From Paraphysomonas bandaiensis (Eukaryota > Protista > Chrysophyceae), in assembly GCA_965644295.1 (NCBI GenBank), contig CBFFRP010000633.1, positions 1 to 18,247 on the forward strand: a DNA stretch of 18,247 nucleotides, read 5' to 3'. Positions 1,491-17,425 of this stretch are shown piece after piece (positions within the stretch are counted from its first letter, which is position 1; each line of letters opens with the position of its first letter). The translations under genes and the position numbers were made by a program. The notes below the pieces were generated by a model that saw only the letters and a program-made list of their open reading frames with translations, was not told the DNA's origin and did no database searches.

Positions 1491-3461
1491 CTAAGCCTAT
1501 ACAATACACACACACTCAAATAAAGCCAAAGTATACTCGACACCTGTATAATCCATCAACCATACCATACTATCAACCATATCATACCATATAACCACAT
1601 AACCATCACACATACCTCTACAGCAGCTTCCTCTTGCTGCCTCTGCCTCTCAGCCTATACAATCCACATATGATTCCAGTGAGGCCATACTCTGGTTCTA
1701 TGAATAGATGGAGCATCCAGTACACATACTCACATGTGTGTTTATGATGAGCTCACGCATCTCATCATCTTTAGCCACATCAACAGGAGTCTCTCCCTCC
1801 TGCAAAAACAACAATAAACACTTAAAAAGAAGTGACACAGTGCATCACCACATACACATACATATATGAGCCCTCATAACACTGTATGTATGTATGTATG
1901 TATGTATGTATGTATGTATGTATGTATGTATGTATGTGTGTATGTATGTATGTATGTATGTATGTATGTATGTATGTATGTATGTATGTATGTATGTATG
2001 TATGTGTGTATGTATGTATGTATGTATGTATGTATGTATGTATGTATGTATGCATGTATGTATGTATGTATGTATGTATGTATGTATGTATGTATGTATG
2101 TATGTATGTATGTATGTATGTATGTATGTATGTATGTATGTATGTATGTATGTATGTATGTATGTGTGTATGTATGTATGTATGTATGCATGTATGTATG
2201 TATGCATGTATGTATGTATGTATGTATGTATGTATGTATTTATGTATGTATGTATGTATGTATGTATGTATGTATGTATGTATGTATGTATGTATGTATG
2301 TATGTATGTATGTGTGTATGTATGTATGTATGTATGTGTGTATGTATGTATGTATGTATGCATGTATGTATGTATGCATGTATGTATGTATGTATGTATG
2401 TATGTATGTATGTATGTATGTATGTATGTATGTATGTATGTATGTATGTATGTATGTATGTATGTATGTATGTATGCATGTATGCATGCATGTATGTATG
2501 TATGTATGTATGTATGTATGTATGTATGTATGTATGTATGTATGTATGCATGTATGTATGTATGTATGTATGTATGTATTTATGTATGTATGTATGTATG
2601 TATGTATGTATGTATGTATGTATGTATGTATGTATGTATGTATGTATGTATGTATGTATGTATGTATGTATGTATGTATGTATGTATGTATGTATGTGTG
2701 TATGTATGTATGTATGTATGTATGTGTGTATGTATGTATGTATGTATGTATGTATGTATGTATGTATGTATGTATGTATGTATGTATGTATGTATGTATG
2801 TATGTATGTATGTATGTATGTATGTATGTATGTATGTATGTATGTATGTATTTATGTATGTATGTATGTATGATGTATGTATGTATGTATGTATGTATGT
2901 ATGTATGTATGTATGTATGTATGTATGTATGTATGTATGTATGTATGTATGTATGTATGTATGTATGTATGTATGTATGTATGTATGTATGTATGTATGT
3001 ATGTATGTATGTATGTATGTATGTATGTATGTATTTATGTATGTATGTATGATGTATGTATGTATGTATGTATGTATGTATGTATGTATGTATGTATGTA
3101 TGTATGTATGTATGTATGTATGTATGTATGTATGTATGTATGTATGTATGTATGTATGTATGTATGTATGTATGTATGTATGTATGATGTATGTATGTAT
3201 GTATGTATGTATGTATGTATGTATGTATGTATGTATGTATGTATGTATGTATGTATGTATGTATGTATGTATGTATGTATGTATGTATGTATGTATGTAT
3301 GTATGTATGTATGTATGTATGTATGTATGTGTGTATGTATGTATGTATGTATGTATGTGTGTATGTATGTATGTATGTATGCATGTATGTATGTATGCAT
3401 GTATGTATGTATGTATGTATGTATGTATGTATGTATGCATGTATGCATGCATGTATGTATG

Positions 3462-3492
<31 letters not shown>

Positions 3493-4853
3493 TGTATGTA
3501 TGTGTATATATGTATGTATGTATGTATATATCGAGGGGTTACTTACATTGTCTCGTATAGTTATATCTGCTCCTTCTCTTATAAGATACTCAGCTGTATC
3601 TCTGTGACCAAAAAAGACAGCCCAGTGAAGAGCTGTACTACCACCCTATAAAACAATAACAATAATCACATATGAGCCTCATAACACTCTGTATGTATGT
3701 ATGTATGTATGTATGTACTGTAAGTATGTATGTATGTATATGTATGTATGTTGTTTGTATGTATGTACGTATGTATGTATGTATATGTATGTATGTGTGT
3801 ATGTATATGTATGTATGTATGTATCGAGGGGTTACTTACATTGTCTCGTATGTTGATATCTGCTCCTGCTCCTATAAGATACTCAGCTGTATCTGTGTGA
3901 CCTCTAGAGGCAGCCTTTTGAAGAGCTGTATAACCAACCTATACAATAACAATCATAATCACATATGAGCCCTCTTAACACTGTAAGTTGATATGTATCT
4001 ATGTATGAATGTATGTATATGTATAGAGGGGTTACTTACATTGTCTACAATAGTTGTATCTGCTCCTGCTCCTATAAGATACTCAGCTGTATCTCTGTGA
4101 CCATAAGAGGCAGCATAGTGAAGAGCCGTGCAACCAAACTATAAAACAATAACAGTGTACACATATGAGCCCTCATAACACTCTATATATGTATGTATGT
4201 ATGTGTGTGTATGTATGTATGTATGTATGTATGTATGTATGTCTGTGTATGTATGTATGTATGTACGTGTGTATGTATGTATGTATACGTATGTATGTAT
4301 GTATGTATGTGCGTGTGTATGTATGTATGTGTGTGTGTATGTATGTATGTGGGAGTTACTTACATTGTCTCGTATAGTTATATCTGCTCCTTCTCTTATA
4401 AGATACTCAGCTGTATCTCTGTGACAATTAGAGGCAGCCTCGTGAAGAGCTGTACAACCATCCTATAAAACCATAATAATAATCACATATTAGCCCTCAT
4501 AACACTGTATGTATGTATGTATGCATGTGTGTATGTATGTATGCATGTATGTATGTATGTATGTATGTATGTATGTATGTATGTATGTATGTATGTATGT
4601 ATGTATGTATGTATCGAGGGGTTACTGACATTGTTTCGTATATTGATATCTGCTCCTGCTCTTATAAGATAGTCAGCTATATCTCTGTGACCATAAATGA
4701 CAGCCAAGTGAAGAGCTGTACAACCCTCCTATACAACAACAATAATAATCACATATGAGCCCTCATAACACTCTATGTATGTATGTATGTATGTATGTAT
4801 GTATGTATGTATGTATGTATGTATGTATGTATGTATGTATGTATATATGTATG

Positions 4854-5497: not shown

Positions 5498-5597
5498 ATC
5501 AGACGACAGAAGTGAAGTGTATGTATATGTATGTACCTGCAGCAGCACATCACTTTATTGTGATGACACACACAACACAACAGAACAAAAAAAAGAT

Positions 5598-5812
5598 ACC
5601 CTTCCTTATATACCCCCCCCGTATATACCCCCCTCCACCCCCGTATATACCCCCTCCCGTATATACCCCTCCCGTATCTACCCCCTATACCCCCCCGTAT
5701 ATACCCCCCGTATCTACCCCTCCCGTATCTACCCCCTCCCGTATCTACCCCCCTATATACCCCCCTATATACCCCCCTATATACCCCTATATACCCCCTC
5801 CCGTACACCCCC
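5598..5812. repeat. C-rich degenerate minisatellite (CCCCC[C/T]..GTAT[A/C]TAC) in the divergent intergenic region; G-quadruplex-prone on the minus strand
   Basis: More than 15 runs of 3-9 C separated by short GTATATA/GTATCTA/TATATA linkers. Confidence 0.85.
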
Positions 5813-6113: not shown

Positions 6114-9100
6114 ATGTCAACAGAAGAGTTAAGATTATTCGCGACATGTAAGTATGAGTATGAAGGTATTTAATTTATGTGTTCTGATGTGGATTATTGA
6201 AGTGGCTTTTGATGCTTATAATCAGTGGGATCCTGAAAAGCATCCTTATCCATATATAAGACACGAGTCAGCGGATGAGGATGTTGAAAGATGGCGTTTC
6301 CATAAAGAGGATTTACAATCAGTTGGATGCGTAACAACAAACACGCCTCTAATTTTAACGTCTGATGTACATGTGCGCTGTTGGAGGCGTGCTGCATCTG
6401 AGGGTCGTGTAGAGATATTTGTATCATTCAGAGGAACTGTTGTTGAAAAGTTTGGGAATATAATCACTGATATTGATTTAGCACAAGTACGTATGAACCC
6501 CGAAACAATGTCAGAAATACCCGCTGATACTCCTCATGAAAGTGAACAGTGTATATATGTTCATCGTGGATTCCTGCGTGCTTACACAGCTTGTCGAAAG
6601 GAACTCTTGAGTGTACTAAGAAGGGCATTTGAGGAGTTCACGGTCACTCGCATTGCCTTCACGGGACACTCTTTAGGAGGAGCTTTGGCAACACTTGCAG
6701 CCGTAGATGTTCAATTGATTAATCAATCTCTTGGAAACAACCCGCCTGAGTCTTCGCCTGGGAGGGAATGTCATACTTTTGGATCCCCCCATGTTGGTGG
6801 GATGACATTTGAGCAACACTTTAGAACCATTGATCTGACACAGTGCAACCGTTATGTGAACGCCATGGATATTGTGCCCAATCTGCTCACTTTGGTTAAT
6901 ATGACCACCCAATATCCTGCGACGAATATCGAAAAAGTGTTTCAGAGGTATGAGGACTTTAAACACGCTCCCATCAGGGAGTGCATCCTGGGGGGGGCGG
7001 TGGACGTGGCTGTTGACATCGTGCTCCCATACGTTATGGCTTCGGACCTGGACACGGATGACACGCAAAGTCCTGTCATGGCTGCTCTCCAGCAGTTCGG
7101 TCTAGCTCCTGTGCAGCAGCACTCCATGCCTGCATACTTGGCGGGAGTGGAGGCCCATGTTGGAGGCTATAAGAGATACATTAAAGTGGTGAAAGGCAAG
7201 CTGGTGCAGAAAGGAATGCAATTGGCTCGCGAGTATTTGGAAGGTGCGGTTATTCCCAAAGGGCGCTCAGGGGTTGGGACTTTAGCAGCTAATTTTGCAG
7301 GTGGGGCGACGAGAGCAGGGGTGGGGGCTGTGATGTCATGGGCCGGGCATTTGTCTGGGGCGGATCTGGTTGTGAATGTGGCGGGACATATTGCCACGAA
7401 TATTCAGTTGAGCAAGCTGCGATCTCAAGTGGACATGTTGCAAGAGAGTGTGGATCAGTTACACGGGAAAATAGACGATATGCACTTGAGAGTGGACGGC
7501 ATACATACAGCTGTTAATGTTCTCGGAGATAGAGTGGAGAGGGGGTTTGATGCTGTGAGCGGTCAGCTGGTGGGATTGTCGAATGTAGTATCGCAGATTC
7601 CAGATCAAGTTCAGGACTTGCTGCTGAAAGATAAAATTAGCGATTTGTGTGAGCAAATGGCATGTATTGAGGAGAAAGTTCAGCATGACGAATATAGGCT
7701 ACGTGGTGAATCTGTTCGCAACGATATCAATTTATTGAGATCGCGTCGTGTGAGAATTGTAAATACTATTAAGGACGAGCTGATGGATATGAATGACAAG
7801 GCACATTTGGCCCACAGCGCGATCACCGCCTTATGCATGGCTTGTATTCTGGAGGTGAACATGCGTTTTTATGAGGTACGGCTGCTGCAGGGGGTGCATG
7901 ATCAGACCTCTAATAACTTTACAGCCGCCTGTTCGAGTTTCGATAGAATGAAACGTATATGCAGTGAATATGTTGGGTGCTGGATTTTCCAAAATGCGAC
8001 AAGCACAGAAAGAATGCAGTCGTTGGCAGTGGAGCTGTCTTCTCTCTGTGGTATGCTCTATTCAATCCATCTACACCAAGAGAGTCAGTCAATGGAGCTT
8101 TGCCTTTTCAATTGTGGTATAGCTTTGATGGATTGCTTGAGTGGCAGTAATGATATCAGTGCAAAAACAATCGTGGCTTTGGGTTATGCATACACAGGTG
8201 TGAACACGTCTCCCCAGTCCCAATACCTACACGGAGTGCTTCTACTGGCCCACCTCTTTTCCAATCGGCACGAATCTTTAGCTGGAGTTCGAAAAGAGTG
8301 TATGGCTATCATCCTTCACCACACGCATGGACATCAGATTGTTCGTTATTTGGTATATGAAATGCCCTCGTATGGGTTAATTTTTTCGCTGCATTGCTAT
8401 CATACCCATCTCCGCAACTGGGAGTGTGACGGCAATACGTGTTCACTGGGTTCATTGTGTGAGATGCTGGATGATAACGAAAAAGAACGTTTATTTGCTA
8501 AAGTATTACACTCTATCACCCTCCTGGCAGATGGTTTCACTGACAAAGTTGATGATCTTCCTCTTCCTGTGTGGGTTTTGTCAATCATTAGTGAGTCTGA
8601 GACTAATACGACATCTCGTAGTTTGTTCACGATTTTCAAGTCATCCTTGTGTAATTTGGAGCCTCAACAACTGGTGCATTTCGTGGAATGTTTTCTCAAC
8701 TACAGTATCCAGAGTCCTGATCCTAAAAAACAAGTGATGTGTAGAAATCTACTGGATGCTGTCAGCAAGGATTTATCCGAAGATGAATTTGGGTCTATAT
8801 TTGTTCTTATGAGCACAGCCACCTCATGTACAGAAGCCAGCGATCTTTCCAAAGAGTGGTTGGATACGTATGGCTGCTATAATGAGCTGTTGCCTGTTGT
8901 TTGCTTGTCTAAGCTATGGGAGACGTTTCATTCTGACAGCGTTCGCTTGTTGTTGAATGAAGCTTTGGATAACACATATGAAAAAGCCGAAACCAAAGTC
9001 ACTATTGATCGTAGCACAAAGCTTTCAGTTCCATGTACGAATGATCTGGGTAATGTTGTGGCGATGGTGGAGAGATGTGCGTCGCTGGGTCACCCTCCCT

Positions 9101-12100
9101 CTCAGGCGGCTTACGGGACGATGCATTTCTTCGGCATAGGGAATGAAGTGCGTCTCGACAAGATTAAGGCGGTGCAGTTGTTTAACATGTGTATTCCTGA
9201 TCTCGTGGCGGAGGTGCGTAGGGGGAACCCATCGATGTTTGTACACTTTTGGTTGGGCTGTATTAAGCTGCGTGGACGAGGACAATTATCAGGAGATGAG
9301 GACGAGGCCATGGAGCTCTTCGCTTGTGCACACGCATCGGGTCACAGGCTGGCTGCCGTTTTTGTGAACAGCCTCTCGCAGGTATATATATGAAGTATTG
9401 TTCTGTGATGGAAATGATATGTGTACAACATCCCACATGTTATCTGTTGAATATTACTCCAGTGATTTTGTAATTATGATCCTTCTGTTTCTATCTTTCT
9501 TGGACACAGGAGGGTTCTGATCCTGAGAATTGGGCATATCTTCACGAGCTCGGAGGCCACAGAAGTGTGAGTTTAATTGCTTGGTTGTTTTGATATTTTA
9601 TGTCATAATACAGTGGAATATATATATTATATTTTGCCTTCATATATGACCATGCAGTATAATATATATGATTGGGCAGCCATGAAATGTGCTTGGTTGC
9701 TGGCTGTATATGTATACTGCCGGTGGTATGTGTGTGGTAATATAAGTATGGGATATATATGTTATATGTTTGTGTAGCGTGTGGTATTTGGTGTTTGGTG
9801 CATGGTATAGGATATGATCAATCTATACAGGAGCCTTTCATTAGATATATGTTTTTCACCTATTCTTCTTGCTTTTATGTGTTTACTTGTGGATGTGATG
9901 ACTATGCAACAGATTGTGAAAGCAGTAGCGGTGTTTCCGGATGGGAGGGTTGCCAGTGGATCTGCTGATGAGACTGTAAGAATATGGGATTCCAGGACCC
10001 AGGCGTGTCCCTTCATACTCAGTGGTCACAGTGGGGTGAGTAAGATGACATGCCAAACACCTAAAGCTGCTATCTACCATTATCCGAAATGAATATTTAC
10101 CTGTAGATAATCGCATATTTGTAATTACTCACTATATTAGCAATCAATATACATGCCCTGTATGTTATGATGCTGTCACATGTGTGGTATATATGCATGG
10201 TGTATGATATGATCAATCTATACAGGAGCCTTTCATGAGAGATATATGTTTTTCACCTATTCTTCTTGCTTTTATGTGTTTACTTGTGGATGTGATGACT
10301 GTACAACAGATTGTGGAAGCAGTAGCGGTGTTTCCGGATGGGAGGGTTGCCAGTGGGTCCACTGATAAGACTGTAAAAATATGGGATTCCGTGACCGGGA
10401 AATGTCTGCACACTCTCACTGGGCATGATGATGTGAGTCGATTGGCATGATTTGGTGCACTGTGTGATGTTTCTGTGTTTCTGTGTTCCTGTGTGGTGTG
10501 TGCCTATGGCGTGTAATGTATATGATTAGGCAGCCATGAAATGTGCTTGGTTGTTTGCTGTATATGTATACTGTCGGTGGTATGTGTGTAGTAATATAAG
10601 TATGGGATATATATGTTATATGCTTGTGTAGCGTGTGGTATTTGGTGTTTGGTGCATGGTATAGGATATGATCAATCTATACAGGAGCCTTTCATTAGAT
10701 ATATGTTTTTCACCTATTCTTCTTGCTTTTATGTGTTTACTTGTGGATGTGATGACTATGCAACAGATTGTGGAAGCAGTAGCGGTGTTTCCAGATAGGA
10801 GGGTTGCTAGTGGGTCCACTGATAAGACTGTAAGAATATGGGATTCCAGGGACGGGAAATGTCTGCACACTCTCACTGGGCATGATGATGTGAGTCGATT
10901 GGCATGATTTGGTGCACTGTGTGATGTTTCTGTGTTCCTGTGTGGTGTGTGCCTATGGCGTGTAATGTATATGATTAGGCAGCCATGAAATGTGCTTGGT
11001 TGTTTGCTGTATATGTATACTGCCGGTGGTATGTGTGTAGTAATATAAGTATGGGATATATATGTTATATGTTTGTGTAGCGTGTGGTATTTGGTGTTTG
11101 GTGCATGGTATAGGATATGATCAATCTATACAGGAGCCTTTCATTAGATATATGTTTTTCACCTATTCTTCTTGCTTTTATGTGTTTAATTGTGGATGTG
11201 ATGACTATGCATCAGATTGTGGAAGCAGTAGCGGTGTTTCCGGATAGGAGGGTTGCTAGTGGGTCCACTGATAAGACTGTAAGAATATGGGATTCCAGGG
11301 ACGGGAAATGTCTGCACACTCTCACTGGGCATGATGATGTGAGTCGATTGGCATGATTTGGTGCACTGTGTGATGTTTCTGTGTTCCTGTGTGGTGTGTG
11401 CCTATGGCGTGTAATGTATATGATTGGGCAGCCATGAAATGTGCTTGGTTGTTTGCTGTATATGTATACTGTCCGTGGTATGTGTGTAGTAATATAAGTA
11501 TGGGATATATATGTTATATGTTTGTGTAGCGTGTGGTATTTGGTGTTTGGTGCATGGTATAGGATATGATCAATCTATACAGGAGCCTTTCATGATATAT
11601 ATGTTTTTCACCTATTCTTCTTGCTTTTATGTGTTTACTTGTGGATGTGATGACTATGCAACAGCGGGTTGTAGCAGTAGCGGTGTTTCCGGATAGGAGG
11701 ATTGCCAGTGGGTCTTGGGATAAGACTGTAAAAATATGGGATTCCGTGACCGGGATATGTCTGCACACTCTCACTGGGCATGATGATGTGAGTCGATTGG
11801 CATGATTTGGTGCACTGTGTGATGTTTCTGTGTTCCTGTATGGTGTGTGCCTATGGCGTGTAATGTATATGATTAGGCAGCCATGAAATGTGCTTGGTTG
11901 TTTGCTGTATATATATACTGTCGGTGGTATGTGTGTAGTAATATAAGTATGGGATATATATGTTATATGTTTGTGTAGCGTGTGGTATTTGGTGTTTGGT
12001 GCATGGTATAGGATATGATCAATCTATACAGGAGCCTTTCATTAGATATATGTTTTTCACCTATTCTTCTTGCTTTTATGTGTTTACTTGTGGATGTGAT

Positions 12101-12661
12101 GACTATGCAACAGCGGGTTGTAGCGGTTGCGGTGTTTCCGGATGGGAGGGTTGCTAGTGGGTCCACTGATAAGACTGTAAGAATATGGGATTCCAGGGAC
12201 GGGAAATGTCTGCACACTCTCACTGGGCATGATGATGTGAGTCGATTGGCATGATTTGGTGCACTGTGTGATGTTTCTGTGTTCCTGTGTGGTGTATGCC
12301 TATGGCGTGTAATGTATATGATTGGGCAGCCATGAAATGTGCTTGGTTGTTTGCTGTATATATATACTGTCGGTGGTATGTGTGTAGTAATATAAGTATG
12401 GGATATATATGTTATATGTTTGTGTAGCGTGTGGTATTTGGTGTTTGGTGCATGGTATAGGATATGATCAATCTATACAGGAGCCTTTCATTAGATATAT
12501 GTTTTTCACCTATTCTTCTTGCTTTTATGTGTTTACTTGTGGATGTGATGACTATGCAACAGCGGGTTGTAGCAGTAGCGGTGTTTCCGGATGGGAGGAT
12601 TGCCAGTGGGTCTTGGGATAAGACTGTAAAAATATGGAGTCATGACGCGATTTGGTTGTGA
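6114..12661 (+). CDS. Class-3 lipase / coiled-coil / Sel1-like / 7xWD40 multidomain protein (~1368 aa), 10 exons: 6114-6147, 6203-9381, 9510-9566, 9913-10035, 10310-10432, 10767-10889, 11216-11338, 11665-11787, 12114-12236, 12563-12661
   Basis: Splicing 6148-6202 (GTAAGT..GAAG) gives [17 protein letters not shown]. Lipase_3 motifs: [22 protein letters not shown] (Ser 6670-6672), [15 protein letters not shown] (Asp 6868-6870), QHSMPAYL (His 7120-7122). Sel1-like [14 protein letters not shown] and [21 protein letters not shown] at ~9100-9350. CAG|GTATAT donor at 9381/9382, a 57-nt linker exon ending GHRS, then 123-nt phase-0 exons such as [41 protein letters not shown]. Last exon ends [10 protein letters not shown]. 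The fusion of the lipase part to the WD40 part is a prediction from splice sites. Confidence 0.85.
9660..12637 (+). repeat. Near-identical tandem array of WD40 exon+intron units, period 449 bp
   Basis: Exon starts at 9913, 10310, 10767, 11216, 11665, 12114, 12563 (spacings 397, 457, 449, 449, 449, 449). Introns of the last five units differ by only a few bases. Confidence 0.97.
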
Positions 12662-13599: not shown

Positions 13600-13829
13600 T
13601 ACAGGGATAGTATTACGATAACTGTAGAGATACGGTGGTGATAAGTATGATATGGGTGCTTAAGTGTAGAGCCAGCTTGTAAGTGCAAGATTGCTATGTG
13701 AGTCACTCTTTAAGGTTATAAGAGCATAAGTAAGGATAGTTCTAATAATTGATAGTTATACGATTATCAGAGCTTAAGGGTCTGTTTAATAGCATCTAAC
13801 AGGCACCTAGTAAGATTAGACGTCACAGC

Positions 13830-14318
13830 ATGTGTAAGAAGTTATCCGCGGGTATGAGCACAAGGTACCCAACTGATGCATCAAGGCAAAGCCCTCTGCC
13901 AAGGACCCCCACATCTCCAATCGTCTCATGTGGTGGACAACGTGAGCTGCCCACGCGACCCAGTGGAATTGATCAACCACGAGGAAGCGGGGGCAGCAAA
14001 AAGTCATGGCGACGATCCCAAAGAGGAGAAGCGCATGGGGCAGAGCTATGGGAGGATGGTGTGGACAGTGCACAAGAAACATCATTCTCAGAGGCATGGT
14101 GGGATACCGGGGCCGGCCAAGGGACGGTCCCATTTGAGAAACCAGTCTACAACCGTGGTGACGTGAGTGGACACAGCAAGGGCAGGCCAGGGATGGAGGC
14201 CACCGGGGAGAGAATGTACAGGGACTGGAGTAGGTTACCAGACTATCAAGAGTCAGAGGAGGGGGACCCACTAACAGGGATGCCTGTACGAGCGAGGGAG
14301 ACAGGAGCGGGGGTGTAA
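13830..14318 (+). other. GC-rich 162-codon ORF of unknown function ending in a polypurine tract and TGTAAC; possibly the 3' internal remnant of an LTR retroelement
   Basis: The ORF coincides with a GC-rich island. Its end reads through GAGCGAGGGAGACAGGAGCGGGGG (14290-14313) and it stops at TAA inside TGTAACC. No recognisable domain. Confidence 0.3.
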
Positions 14319-15797: not shown

Positions 15798-17425
15798 ATG
15801 GATACTAGTCAAGAGGCTGTCACGGACCTGCAGGCTCTAATGCAAGGTTTCGTGGAACAAATCACCGGTGCCGTAAACACTTTGACAGAAACGGTAACAG
15901 AGGTCAAAGACGACCTCAAGGAATTGAAACAGAGGGTCTCGGTACTGGAAGGAGCTGGTTATTTTCCCAATCCAACCCCGCCTGCTAATTCTCCAGCAGA
16001 GGCCAGTGAAACCAGTCAGGGCCGAGCCATAGAAGAATTGAAATCTAAGCTAGAGCAATCTGAGAAACGAAGGAAGGATAGGCCCTCAGTTCTGCAAGAG
16101 ATAGCAAAAACCTCGCGAAGGCAATCTATTGAGGCTATAATCCCTACGCGTTTTTCAGCCGAAGAAGAGGACGAAGCGGATCCATTCGATGTAAAATCAG
16201 TTAGAGGAAGCATATTCAGAGAGATCGCAAGCAGTGAGAAGCAAGTGGCTGCTAGTGGGGAGGTGATAATAAGGCAAGCTAAAGAATGCAATGTACGGAT
16301 TGACAGCTTTCAACTTTCGAAAGTGACCAAAGCTATAAAAGCCATCATAAACTTTCAGGAGGAGGAGAATACTAAGGTCAGAGTTCAGAAAATACTTTCC
16401 AGGCCGTGCAAAGAGCATCTGCGTACAAAATACAAATTGACTCAGGGCCAGCTAGGGGCGTTGGGAATTACAGACTTGATCAGAGTTATAGCTAATGAAA
16501 CAAAGGTATTTTCTAGACCGGCTTTCTACAAAGAGTTGGAGGAGGCTTTGAGGCACACCAAGGTCATGGGGTGGTCTGTAGTCTCTCCTGTAAACCACGA
16601 GACATTCTACCACCAACAGTTAAAGTTGATTTCCGAGTTTGGTAGGATGCTTAACATCATGTTAGAAGGCAACAAAGACTGGTGCCCCAGAATTGATGAC
16701 AAGCCTGGAGGACTGATTCGACTCTTTAAAACGTGTAATGATCCGGTATACGTGGAGCATGTATTATCTTGTATGACTGAAACAAAATTCAAGACTATGC
16801 AAGAGTTTTTTGATCAGTTTTCGGAGATCATTTATGATGAATATGAATTGAGCGTTGCAGTACGAGAGATACCTTACAAAAGTCTGATTGAGCACAAGGA
16901 GAGGTTGAGGACTTACAGAGAAAAGAAAGAGAACGAGAAGAAGGTTTTTCGAAGCCACGTGTCATAAAACCCTTAAATGCTATTGATGGAGGAGCATATG
17001 AACTCTCAGAAAGTGACACTGAGCAACCAGTATCAGAGGAAACAGCTATGGATGAAGATGATTGGAGGAATTATTTACCAGAACCAGCTGCGCCTACGGT
17101 CACTATATCAGCTGATTTGAAACCAGAGGCTTCACTTAGCATTGATTTGAATGAGTCAGATGAGGAGTCCGATCAAATTCCAGAACATTTACACGTGGTG
17201 GGACCACCAGTCAAGTCTGATAAAAAGTTTGGGTGTCTTCAGAAGATACTGACTGGGACGTGTAGGAGGGAAAACTGCAAATATTTGCACCACGGACCAG
17301 AAGTGGTTAAAGCAGCAAATGAAATGAGACTAAAGATTGATCAGTTCATTCAAGGTACATCAAACTCTGGTGCGACCACGAAGACTTCCATCATGCGGAG
17401 GGAACCCTCGGGTACTCACGCTTGA
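15798..17425 (+). CDS. gag: Gag-like protein in two overlapping frames (15798-16967, then a -1 frame open ~16892-17425) with an N-terminal coiled coil and a C-terminal CCCH-type zinc finger
   Basis: ORF1 is 389 aa with heptads LTETVTEVKDDLKELKQRVSVLE. The -1 frame continues ..FSKPRVIKPLNAIDGGAYELSESDTEQPVSEETAMDEDDW.. to CLQKILTGTCRRENCKYLH (C-x8-C-x4-C-x3-H, 17234-17290). It lies directly upstream of the protease. Confidence 0.7.

Follow-up and report, generated by a model that had tools for sequence, protein, structure and literature searches.

A predicted lipase–alpha-solenoid–WD40 gene with one-repeat exons in the chrysophyte Paraphysomonas bandaiensis

Introduction

The receptors for innate immunity and allorecognition found in animals, plants, fungi and bacteria mostly have a STAND (signal transduction ATPase with numerous domains) NTPase between their effector and their diversifying repeats. 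A locus in Paraphysomonas bandaiensis raises the question of whether an effector and a repeat-based sensor could be coupled with no such nucleotide switch between them. It lies on contig CBFFRP010000633.1, in a stretch of 18,247 nucleotides that was analysed as a whole (the window; gene coordinates are on the + strand unless stated otherwise) and that has a eukaryotic appearance, with GT-AG introns, long (TGTA)n microsatellites, AT-rich spacers and coding sequence of about 42–50% GC. A preliminary description of this DNA had proposed that a class 3 lipase, a Gly-rich hydrophobic segment, a coiled coil, a Sel1-like region and seven WD40 repeats are fused there in one protein.

With good confidence, we describe a single intron-containing gene on the + strand, from about 6154 to 12661, with nine predicted exons and a predicted product of about 1370 residues. 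In this product a Lipase_3 domain, an all-helical middle and a seven-bladed WD40 propeller would be joined, the propeller being encoded by an array of one-repeat exons that are more variable than the introns between them.

Results

Gene structure and splice junctions

The lipase and the helical middle are encoded by a long first exon, which is followed by a short intron and a second, very short exon; seven WD40 exons, listed with the propeller below, complete the gene.

6154–9381, + strand: exon 1, 1076 codons, from the open reading frame (ORF) list, its translation and the alignment with relatives; first in-frame ATG at 6154, second at 6160
9382–9509, + strand: intron 1, 128 nucleotides, GT..AG; read-through meets a stop after three codons (TGA 9391–9393)
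9510–9566, + strand: exon 2, 19 codons, following a tract rich in pyrimidines and an AG; similar to the strand-D/GH part of WD40 repeats

The ORF at 6154–9393 has 1079 residues, and near its end is the exon 1 donor, CAG/GTATAT, with its GT at 9382; homology with the relatives ceases exactly at this donor in the alignment. In the frame of exon 2 no ATG follows the stop at 9477, so that the strand that would close the propeller can be translated only as a continuation of the upstream exon. The WD40 exons are likewise all without Met. Six of them have 123 nucleotides and the last has 99, including the stop; all are in phase 0, and each is open in one of the three frames only and bordered by AG/GTGAGT. 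The GC content at third codon positions is 0.47 in exon 1 and 0.41–0.47 in the WD40 exons, compared with a GC content of 0.32–0.39 in the introns. The end of exon 1, the start of exon 2 and the start of the first WD40 exon agree with the preliminary description (9381, 9510 and 9913), which had also held that the ORF track misses the fusion; a closing strand with no start codon of its own, together with intact borders and frames, bears this out.

The same description had placed the start of the gene at 6114, for which the relatives give no support.

6114–6165, + strand: alternative 5′ exon of the preliminary description, which needs a 37-nucleotide intron at 6166–6202 and is less parsimonious

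The remaining introns of the gene measure 128–346 nucleotides, against 37 for the proposed 5′ intron, and the four full-length relatives all begin with MAFD, equivalent to codon 17 of the ORF (6202). These two observations make the ATG at 6154 or 6160 the simpler start. The sequence at 6154–6201 encodes 16 hydrophobic residues ahead of the MAFD equivalent that are absent from all relatives, and the initiator Met of the family is replaced here by Val (GTG). This extension may be an N-terminal anchor, a signal-like extension or untranslated sequence.

Searches of the window with Rfam and for tRNAs, conserved introns included, found no family and no tRNA, and the minus-strand ORFs beneath the gene match no family.

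The lipase domain

The N-terminal part of the predicted protein is a Lipase_3 domain with the following features.

6418–6891, + strand: Lipase_3 domain (PF01764), residues 89–246; Pfam E = 1.2e-24, 87.3 bits against a cut-off of 22
6670–6672, + strand: codon of Ser173, the nucleophile in GHSLGG, aligned to the Ser of the Rhizomucor and Thermomyces lipases; invariant in the family
6868–6870, + strand: codon of Asp239, the acid in MDIVP, aligned to the DIVP Asp of the Rhizomucor and Thermomyces lipases; invariant
7120–7122, + strand: codon of His323 in QQHSMPAYL, the candidate catalytic His; invariant in alignment A3

The Pfam cut-off is also passed by the relatives P0001, P0074 and P0077. In the PDB, the lipase part matches the lipases of Rhizomucor and Thermomyces, PLA1 of plants, and EDS1 and PAD4 in their lipase-like part, and Foldseek likewise matches the N-terminal part of the model to fungal lipases. 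Lipase-domain matches in a protein word search span green algae, plants, oomycetes, red algae and amoebozoa.

Identification of the catalytic histidine is complicated by the presence of two invariant candidates, His271 and His323. Both, like the Ser and the Asp, are unchanged across the four full-length family members, and the alignments with solved lipases end after the Asp, before either His; the AlphaFold2 (AF2) model of the region is of low confidence. His323 fits the H...Y motif of class 3 lipases better than does His271 and is the preferred candidate. It lies about 84 residues beyond Asp239, with a conserved hydrophobic insert between the two. Two thirds of the intact-looking Ser/Asp/His triad of the preliminary description are thus verified by alignment to solved lipases, whereas its His falls outside those alignments.

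Linker, helical scaffold and absence of an NTPase

Beyond the lipase the protein was modelled with AF2 from the eight-sequence alignment A2. The mean predicted local distance difference test score (pLDDT) is 57, and the confident part, mostly at 80–90, covers residues 700–1070. From residue 325 to the end the model contains helices only.

7249–7386, + strand: Gly/Ala-rich segment, residues 366–411; 41% Gly plus Ala, indel-rich alignment, pLDDT below 35
7363–8073, + strand: long-helix region, residues 404–640, of coiled-coil or helical-bundle type, from the AF2 secondary structure
8221–9369, + strand: alpha-solenoid, residues 690–1072; AF2 pLDDT mostly 80–90
9094–9186, + strand: Sel1-like repeat, residues 981–1011, inside the alpha-solenoid; Pfam Sel1, below threshold

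The Gly/Ala-rich segment had been described as hydrophobic, and the lipase as membrane-attacking. The composition is as described but the membrane-like hydropathy is absent: the highest Kyte–Doolittle score over 19 residues is 1.1, no convincing membrane helix is found, and we reject a membrane segment. Both the length and the sequence of the segment differ among the relatives, and it is probably a flexible linker and not a membrane-attacking element. It is followed by a conserved block, W.G..SG.DL.V.V.GHAAT..QL.

The coiled coil of the preliminary description corresponds to the long helices modelled at residues 404–640, which coiled-coil families match only weakly. For the Sel1-like region the picture is mixed. 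Pfam Sel1 reaches E = 4e-4 and 21.1 bits (21.7 bits in the relative P0074), short of its cut-off of 30.7, whereas in a Foldseek comparison of the solenoid with the PDB it is SEL1L and Sel1-repeat proteins of bacteria that match best (E about 2e-4), and PP2A-A, AP2 and Tom70 are matched as well. Since HEAT and tetratricopeptide repeat (TPR) solenoids score equally well, only the assignment as an alpha-solenoid is secure.

A search of the protein for Walker A and Walker B patterns found none, and no NTPase was matched by Pfam, NCBIfam, PADLOC, PDB sequence and profile comparison or Foldseek. The helical middle alone has no significant sequence match in the PDB, where lipases are also all that a whole-family profile recovers. 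The PADLOC defence families gave only coiled-coil noise, in one relative, and NCBIfam only a lipase-type match far below threshold. The absence of a STAND NTPase, already noted in the preliminary description for want of a visible Walker A motif, is thus drawn from motif, secondary structure, sequence, profile and fold evidence together. That a helical scaffold "replaces" a NACHT or NB-ARC domain can be said by analogy only.

The WD40 propeller

Each of the seven WD40 exons encodes one repeat.

9913–10035, + strand: E1, 41 codons, phase 0, a diverged copy; Pfam WD40
10310–10432, + strand: E2; Pfam WD40, AG/GT borders
10767–10889, + strand: E3; Pfam WD40, AG/GT borders
11216–11338, + strand: E4, one silent difference from E3; Pfam WD40
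11665–11787, + strand: E5; Pfam WD40, AG/GT borders
12114–12236, + strand: E6; Pfam WD40, AG/GT borders
12563–12661, + strand: E7, strands A–C, unique tail SHDAIWL, TGA at 12659–12661; Pfam WD40

The exons were searched singly, so the closure of the propeller is argued from the evidence for each exon and is predicted only. All seven pass Pfam WD40, with 28.5–36.5 bits against a cut-off of 27, in agreement with the count of exactly seven C-terminal repeats given previously. There are seven A–B–C sets of strands (E1–E7) and seven D strands, contributed by exon 2 and the tails of E1–E6. This count corresponds to one closed, seven-bladed propeller, predicted to be fastened by exon 2 as its "velcro" strand, an arrangement that would explain why E7 is "truncated" after strand C. 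Among solved structures, the Nostoc propeller 2YMU, which is highly repetitive, matches a single blade best. A tblastn search of the window with a blade recovers only the seven exons and no additional, inactivated or antisense copy.

Variation in exons and introns of the array

The WD40 exons and their introns form a tandem array, for which the data represent one haplotype.

9657–12637, + strand: tandem exon-plus-intron array with a 449-bp unit, from Tandem Repeats Finder, pairwise identities and blastn of the intron against the window

Tandem Repeats Finder reports 5.4 copies of the 449-bp unit at 95% identity; the array introns have 326–334 nucleotides. The homogenised sequence begins inside the intron ahead of E1, of which 256 nucleotides are 97% identical to the other introns. 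By blastn, the array intron is not found elsewhere in the window as a dispersed repeat. Earlier called near-identical throughout, the repeats deserve that term for E2–E7 but not for E1, which is only 72–79% identical in nucleotide sequence to E2–E6 and 83% to E7 (over the 75 nucleotides shared). E1 and the first ∼160 nucleotides of the following intron (9913–10193) form a diverged island between homogenised flanks, and on its upstream side the homogenised sequence stops right where the exon begins.

Within the homogenised part, introns I3–I7 are 97.9–99.1% identical, whereas exons E2–E7 are 81–94% identical, except for the pairs E3/E4 and E5/E7 at 99%. Across four units in perfect register, 20 of the 123 exon positions segregate but only 10 of the 326 intron positions (Fisher p = 3.7e-6). 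The exon differences occur as linked multi-nucleotide patches with two states each, at codons 1–3, codon 11, codons 13–18, and codon 23 together with codons 28–29. These patches are seen in all four pairwise combinations among six exons, which implies exchange with breakpoints inside the 123-nucleotide exon. The pattern agrees with conversion in short tracts among types of blade that have diverged, or with old variation retained while the flanks homogenise; a burst of new adaptive point mutations fits it less well.

In WD40 propellers the D–A and B–C loops lie on the top face and the A–B and C–D loops on the bottom face. By this textbook topology, the radical changes at positions 1 (I/R), 3 (E/V/K) and 18 (T/W/A) would fall on the top face and those at positions 11 (G/R), 28–29 (RD/VT) and 31 (K/I) on the bottom; the strands are constant. 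Variation that is greater in exons than in introns and concentrated in patches in the loops is typical of the fast-diversifying recognition domains of immune-type receptors. Over 205 residues, E2–E6 have a mean amino acid identity of 88%, above the 85% criterion for high internal conservation, which is satisfied by about 1% or less of ankyrin, TPR and WD repeats and is enriched in fungal NOD-like receptors (NLRs) (PMC4986451). The combination of internal conservation and patchy variation is the signature known from NLR sensor domains.

A rare protein family

When the whole ORF served as query in a word search, P0001 (1079 residues, 40% identity, 98% coverage) was the single full-length relative to come back; the other matches were to the Lipase_3 domain. 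A combined Lipase_3 and WD40 protein, for which the preliminary description had suggested an architecture search, is absent from all 73 word-search matches, and a literature search for such a fusion returned nothing relevant.

An exhaustive search with the 777-residue middle alone, against 1.84 billion protein representatives, recovered six relatives, all of them environmental sequences: P0001, P0074 (1115 residues), three fragments, one of which represents the 1128-residue P0080, and a caspase-Sel1 protein that matches the Sel1-like end only. Scans of metagenome contigs with alignments A1 and A3 found no relative. On sequence evidence, the lipase-plus-scaffold part is thus a very rare family of environmental sequences only, which speaks against its being a widespread conserved metabolic lipase family.

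The full-length relatives share the Lipase_3 N-terminus, and their homology ends where exon 1 ends here. Past this shared end their tails have 5–35 residues and are unconserved, as would fit reading into an intron at a shared position.

Comparison with known systems

Four groups of proteins resemble parts of the predicted product. The fungal HET-E, HET-D and HET-R proteins (HNWD) and the sesB-like lipase NLRs also have a hydrolytic effector at the N-terminus and a WD40 propeller at the C-terminus. In HNWD-type arrays the repeats are 80–100% identical with few variable positions, and concerted evolution is combined with diversification (PMC4986451, PMC12222747); the conserved repeats of P. bandaiensis, with a mean blade identity of 88% and variation at few sites, are similar. 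In contrast to the fungal NLRs, however, the present gene has no NACHT or NB-ARC domain, its effector is of Lipase_3 and not of sesB/SERAC1 type, its repeats are encoded one per exon with conserved introns and not as a continuous repeat region, and its variable sites lie on either face of the blade. We do not class the protein as an NLR, since the NTPase that defines these receptors was looked for and is absent.

The exon design finds its closest parallel in the candidate ROCO-LRR (leucine-rich repeat) and NB-ARC-TPR receptors of Ectocarpus, in which repeats are encoded one per exon, in exons of equal length and phase 0 that allow in-frame gain, loss and shuffling (PMC3341825). In P. bandaiensis the design is the same, with seven exons on a 123-nucleotide plan. 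The repeats differ, however, being WD40 and not LRR or TPR, and there is no GTPase or NB-ARC domain. The tandem unit, moreover, includes the introns, which are better conserved than the exons, and inactivated or antisense repeat exons were not found in them.

Class 3 lipases, such as those of Rhizomucor miehei and Thermomyces lanuginosus, plant PLA1/DAD1-like enzymes and C2-lipases, share the Lipase_3 domain, GHSLGG and DIVP. They differ from the present protein in its ∼84-residue spacing from Asp to candidate His and in its fusion to about 1000 further residues, and it has no C2 domain and no secretion signal shared with its relatives. The plant immune proteins EDS1, PAD4 and SAG101 also place a Lipase_3-type domain before an all-helical region, and the lipase part matches EDS1 and PAD4 with E = 3.6e-7 to 3.7e-5 by sequence and down to 2.5e-10 by profile. 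The helices here, however, match solenoids (SEL1L, HEAT, TPR), and EDS1 proteins have no WD40 repeats. Sequence matches cover the lipase part only, the Foldseek matches listed include no EDS1 chain, and a C-terminal EP domain was not recognised. Since the similarity is limited to the lipase fold, the protein is not assigned to the EDS1 family.

Two further likenesses concern single modules. The propeller of Nostoc punctiforme, 2YMU, has consensus-like, nearly identical repeats and gives the best blade match, although it is bacterial, free of introns, composed of 14 repeats and set in another protein context. SEL1L and the bacterial Sel1-like repeat (SLR) proteins are the best fold matches of the C-terminal solenoid, with weak Pfam Sel1 matches in two family members, but these are below threshold and HEAT and TPR solenoids do as well.

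Neighbouring loci

Upstream of the lipase gene, head to head at a distance of about 650 bp, a divergent ankyrin-repeat gene runs on the − strand from 5496 to about 1700.

5324–5226, 5030–4932, 4728–4630, 4462–4364, 4138–4040, 3938–3840 and 3645–3547, − strand: seven ankyrin exons of 99 nucleotides, one repeat each

These exons are 77–100% identical in nucleotide sequence, two of them being identical, and follow the same one-repeat-per-exon design as the WD40 array; amplification of exons together with their introns may be common throughout this genome. The ankyrin introns consist largely of (TGTA)n, up to 5389; the longest tract, of 1.65 kb at 1883–3531, has 413 units at 96% purity. Between the divergent genes, at 5596–5798, lies a C-rich tandem repeat, (CCCCCGTATATA)n, with periods of 12–67 nucleotides, in what is possibly a bidirectional promoter region.

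A block of 28–30% GC, perhaps inserted DNA of a foreign or organellar kind, takes up the first 1100 nucleotides of the window and sets them apart from the remainder. An Asn/Thr/Leu-rich ORF leaves the window here on the − strand (471 down to 1); it has no Pfam family and no relative among viral contigs. A perfect hairpin, aattacaacc gaa ggttgtaatt, is present in the same AT-rich block near 900–925.

Downstream, consecutive + strand ORFs of 389 and 125 residues (15798–16967 and 17048–17425), the second with a CCCH zinc-knuckle-like motif, have as a pair 13 environmental relatives of 355–650 residues, the best at 79% identity; they are probably the two parts of a single, interrupted ORF that belongs to a repeated or mobile element. 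A GC-richer patch (48%) at 13816–14318 contains overlapping ORFs of 151 and 162 residues on opposite strands, which match no Pfam family.

Discussion

The features of this locus can be combined in a single explanation, to which, as a whole statement, we give a probability of roughly 0.5. The array would evolve by unequal crossing-over or gene conversion, that is by concerted evolution, with blade variation retained or imported. The resulting propeller would serve as a diversifying protein- or ligand-binding module that targets or switches the N-terminal lipase, the lipase being the output, with catalytic residues conserved across the family, and the helical bundle and solenoid acting as a spacer or oligomerisation element. 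Such a protein would be a two-part effector-sensor of the conflict or non-self recognition type, with no need of a nucleotide switch. It is the parallel with the arrays of fungal NLRs and brown-algal candidate receptors that makes a diversifying binding module the most likely role for the propeller. The sensor-effector function itself we propose only tentatively and with less than even odds; the terms "ligand-gated" and "membrane-attacking", used of the lipase in the preliminary description, are conjecture.

Several observations weigh against this explanation. No death, pore or signalling domain was found in the Pfam, PDB, Foldseek and PADLOC searches. That the relatives carry WD40 exons is conjecture, their ORFs ending at a common point with unconserved tails, which fits a shared intron; every splice junction used here is predicted from sequence. 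In the array, 6 of the 32 codons whose amino acid is invariant vary silently, and silent differences are raised in the exons; since silent changes accompany the patches, simple positive selection on new point mutations fails to explain the pattern. The variable positions are predicted to lie on both faces of the blades and not on the canonical top face only. Highly conserved WD40 arrays are, furthermore, not reliably reconstructed from short reads (PMC12222747). Finally, the duplicated exons may reflect a tendency of the whole genome and not mark an immune function.

This last point leads to the simplest competing view, of an ordinary regulated lipase, a lipid-metabolic or membrane-remodelling enzyme for which solenoid and propeller are scaffolds and the blades are products of recent tandem exon duplication. 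The ankyrin gene, with its one-repeat-per-exon tandem design, suggests just such a genome-wide mutational habit, the lipase is closest to plant and algal C2-lipases and enzymes of PLA1 type, and the searches that matched no NTPase and no death, pore or signalling domain are as this view would have it. Duplication alone, however, predicts exons at least as similar as the introns, whereas the exons are several-fold more variable and carry shuffled patches, and the extreme rarity of the family is unlike that of a conserved metabolic enzyme; we judge the view somewhat unlikely. An NLR of cryptic kind, with a degenerate STAND NTPase hidden in the helical middle, would account for the order of effector, middle and repeats. 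It is exceedingly improbable: there is no Walker A or B motif and no β-α-β core, the protein is all-helical from residue 325, the well-modelled residues 700–1070 included, and the motif search, AF2 model, Foldseek and PDB profile together led us to reject it.

The remaining alternatives concern the gene itself. If the lipase-solenoid ORF ended at TGA 9391–9393, the WD40 exons would belong to a separate transcript or to a decaying duplication, and it is true that all database relatives are ORFs ending at the end point of exon 1 and that the frame upstream of each WD40 exon is open for about 100 nucleotides with ATGs, for example at 9814. Exon 2, however, clearly belongs to the propeller, with strand D and GH, and downstream of the stop at 9477 its frame offers no ATG. 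Eight introns keep GT-AG, seven exons keep frame and length, the strand count closes exactly, and the unconserved tails of 5–35 residues in the relatives are what reading into an intron predicts. We therefore consider two genes or a dead array quite unlikely. The copy number and the mosaic of patches could also be products of the assembly, a longer or allelic array having been collapsed or made chimeric, a concern that 449-bp units with 98% intron identity do nothing to allay. Against this, unit lengths, frames and splice sites are intact, the array is bounded by unique sequence, and its strands fit one closed propeller, so that an artefact of assembly appears very unlikely.

The combination of an effector with highly conserved diversifying repeats, an exon-per-repeat array and a nearly unsampled protein family is a variation on known designs. 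A bolder proposal, that the gene represents a class of NTPase-free effector-sensor receptors in this eukaryotic lineage, in which a coiled-coil and solenoid scaffold replaces the switch, short patches are exchanged like cassettes from one blade exon to another and the ankyrin gene is a partner, we regard as rather unlikely. If it were true, gene conversion would keep the introns uniform as substrates for recombination while the WD40 sensor diversifies.

Should the two-part effector-sensor be a real recognition protein, the nucleotide switch would be dispensable in some lineages, and P. bandaiensis would provide a second eukaryotic case, after the brown algae, of sensors made from one-repeat exons. 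The greater variability of exons than of introns makes the locus a compact test case for concerted evolution alongside diversification. With an ordinary function, too, the locus would define a lipase family that is very rare and offer a clean instance of exon-plus-intron tandem amplification.

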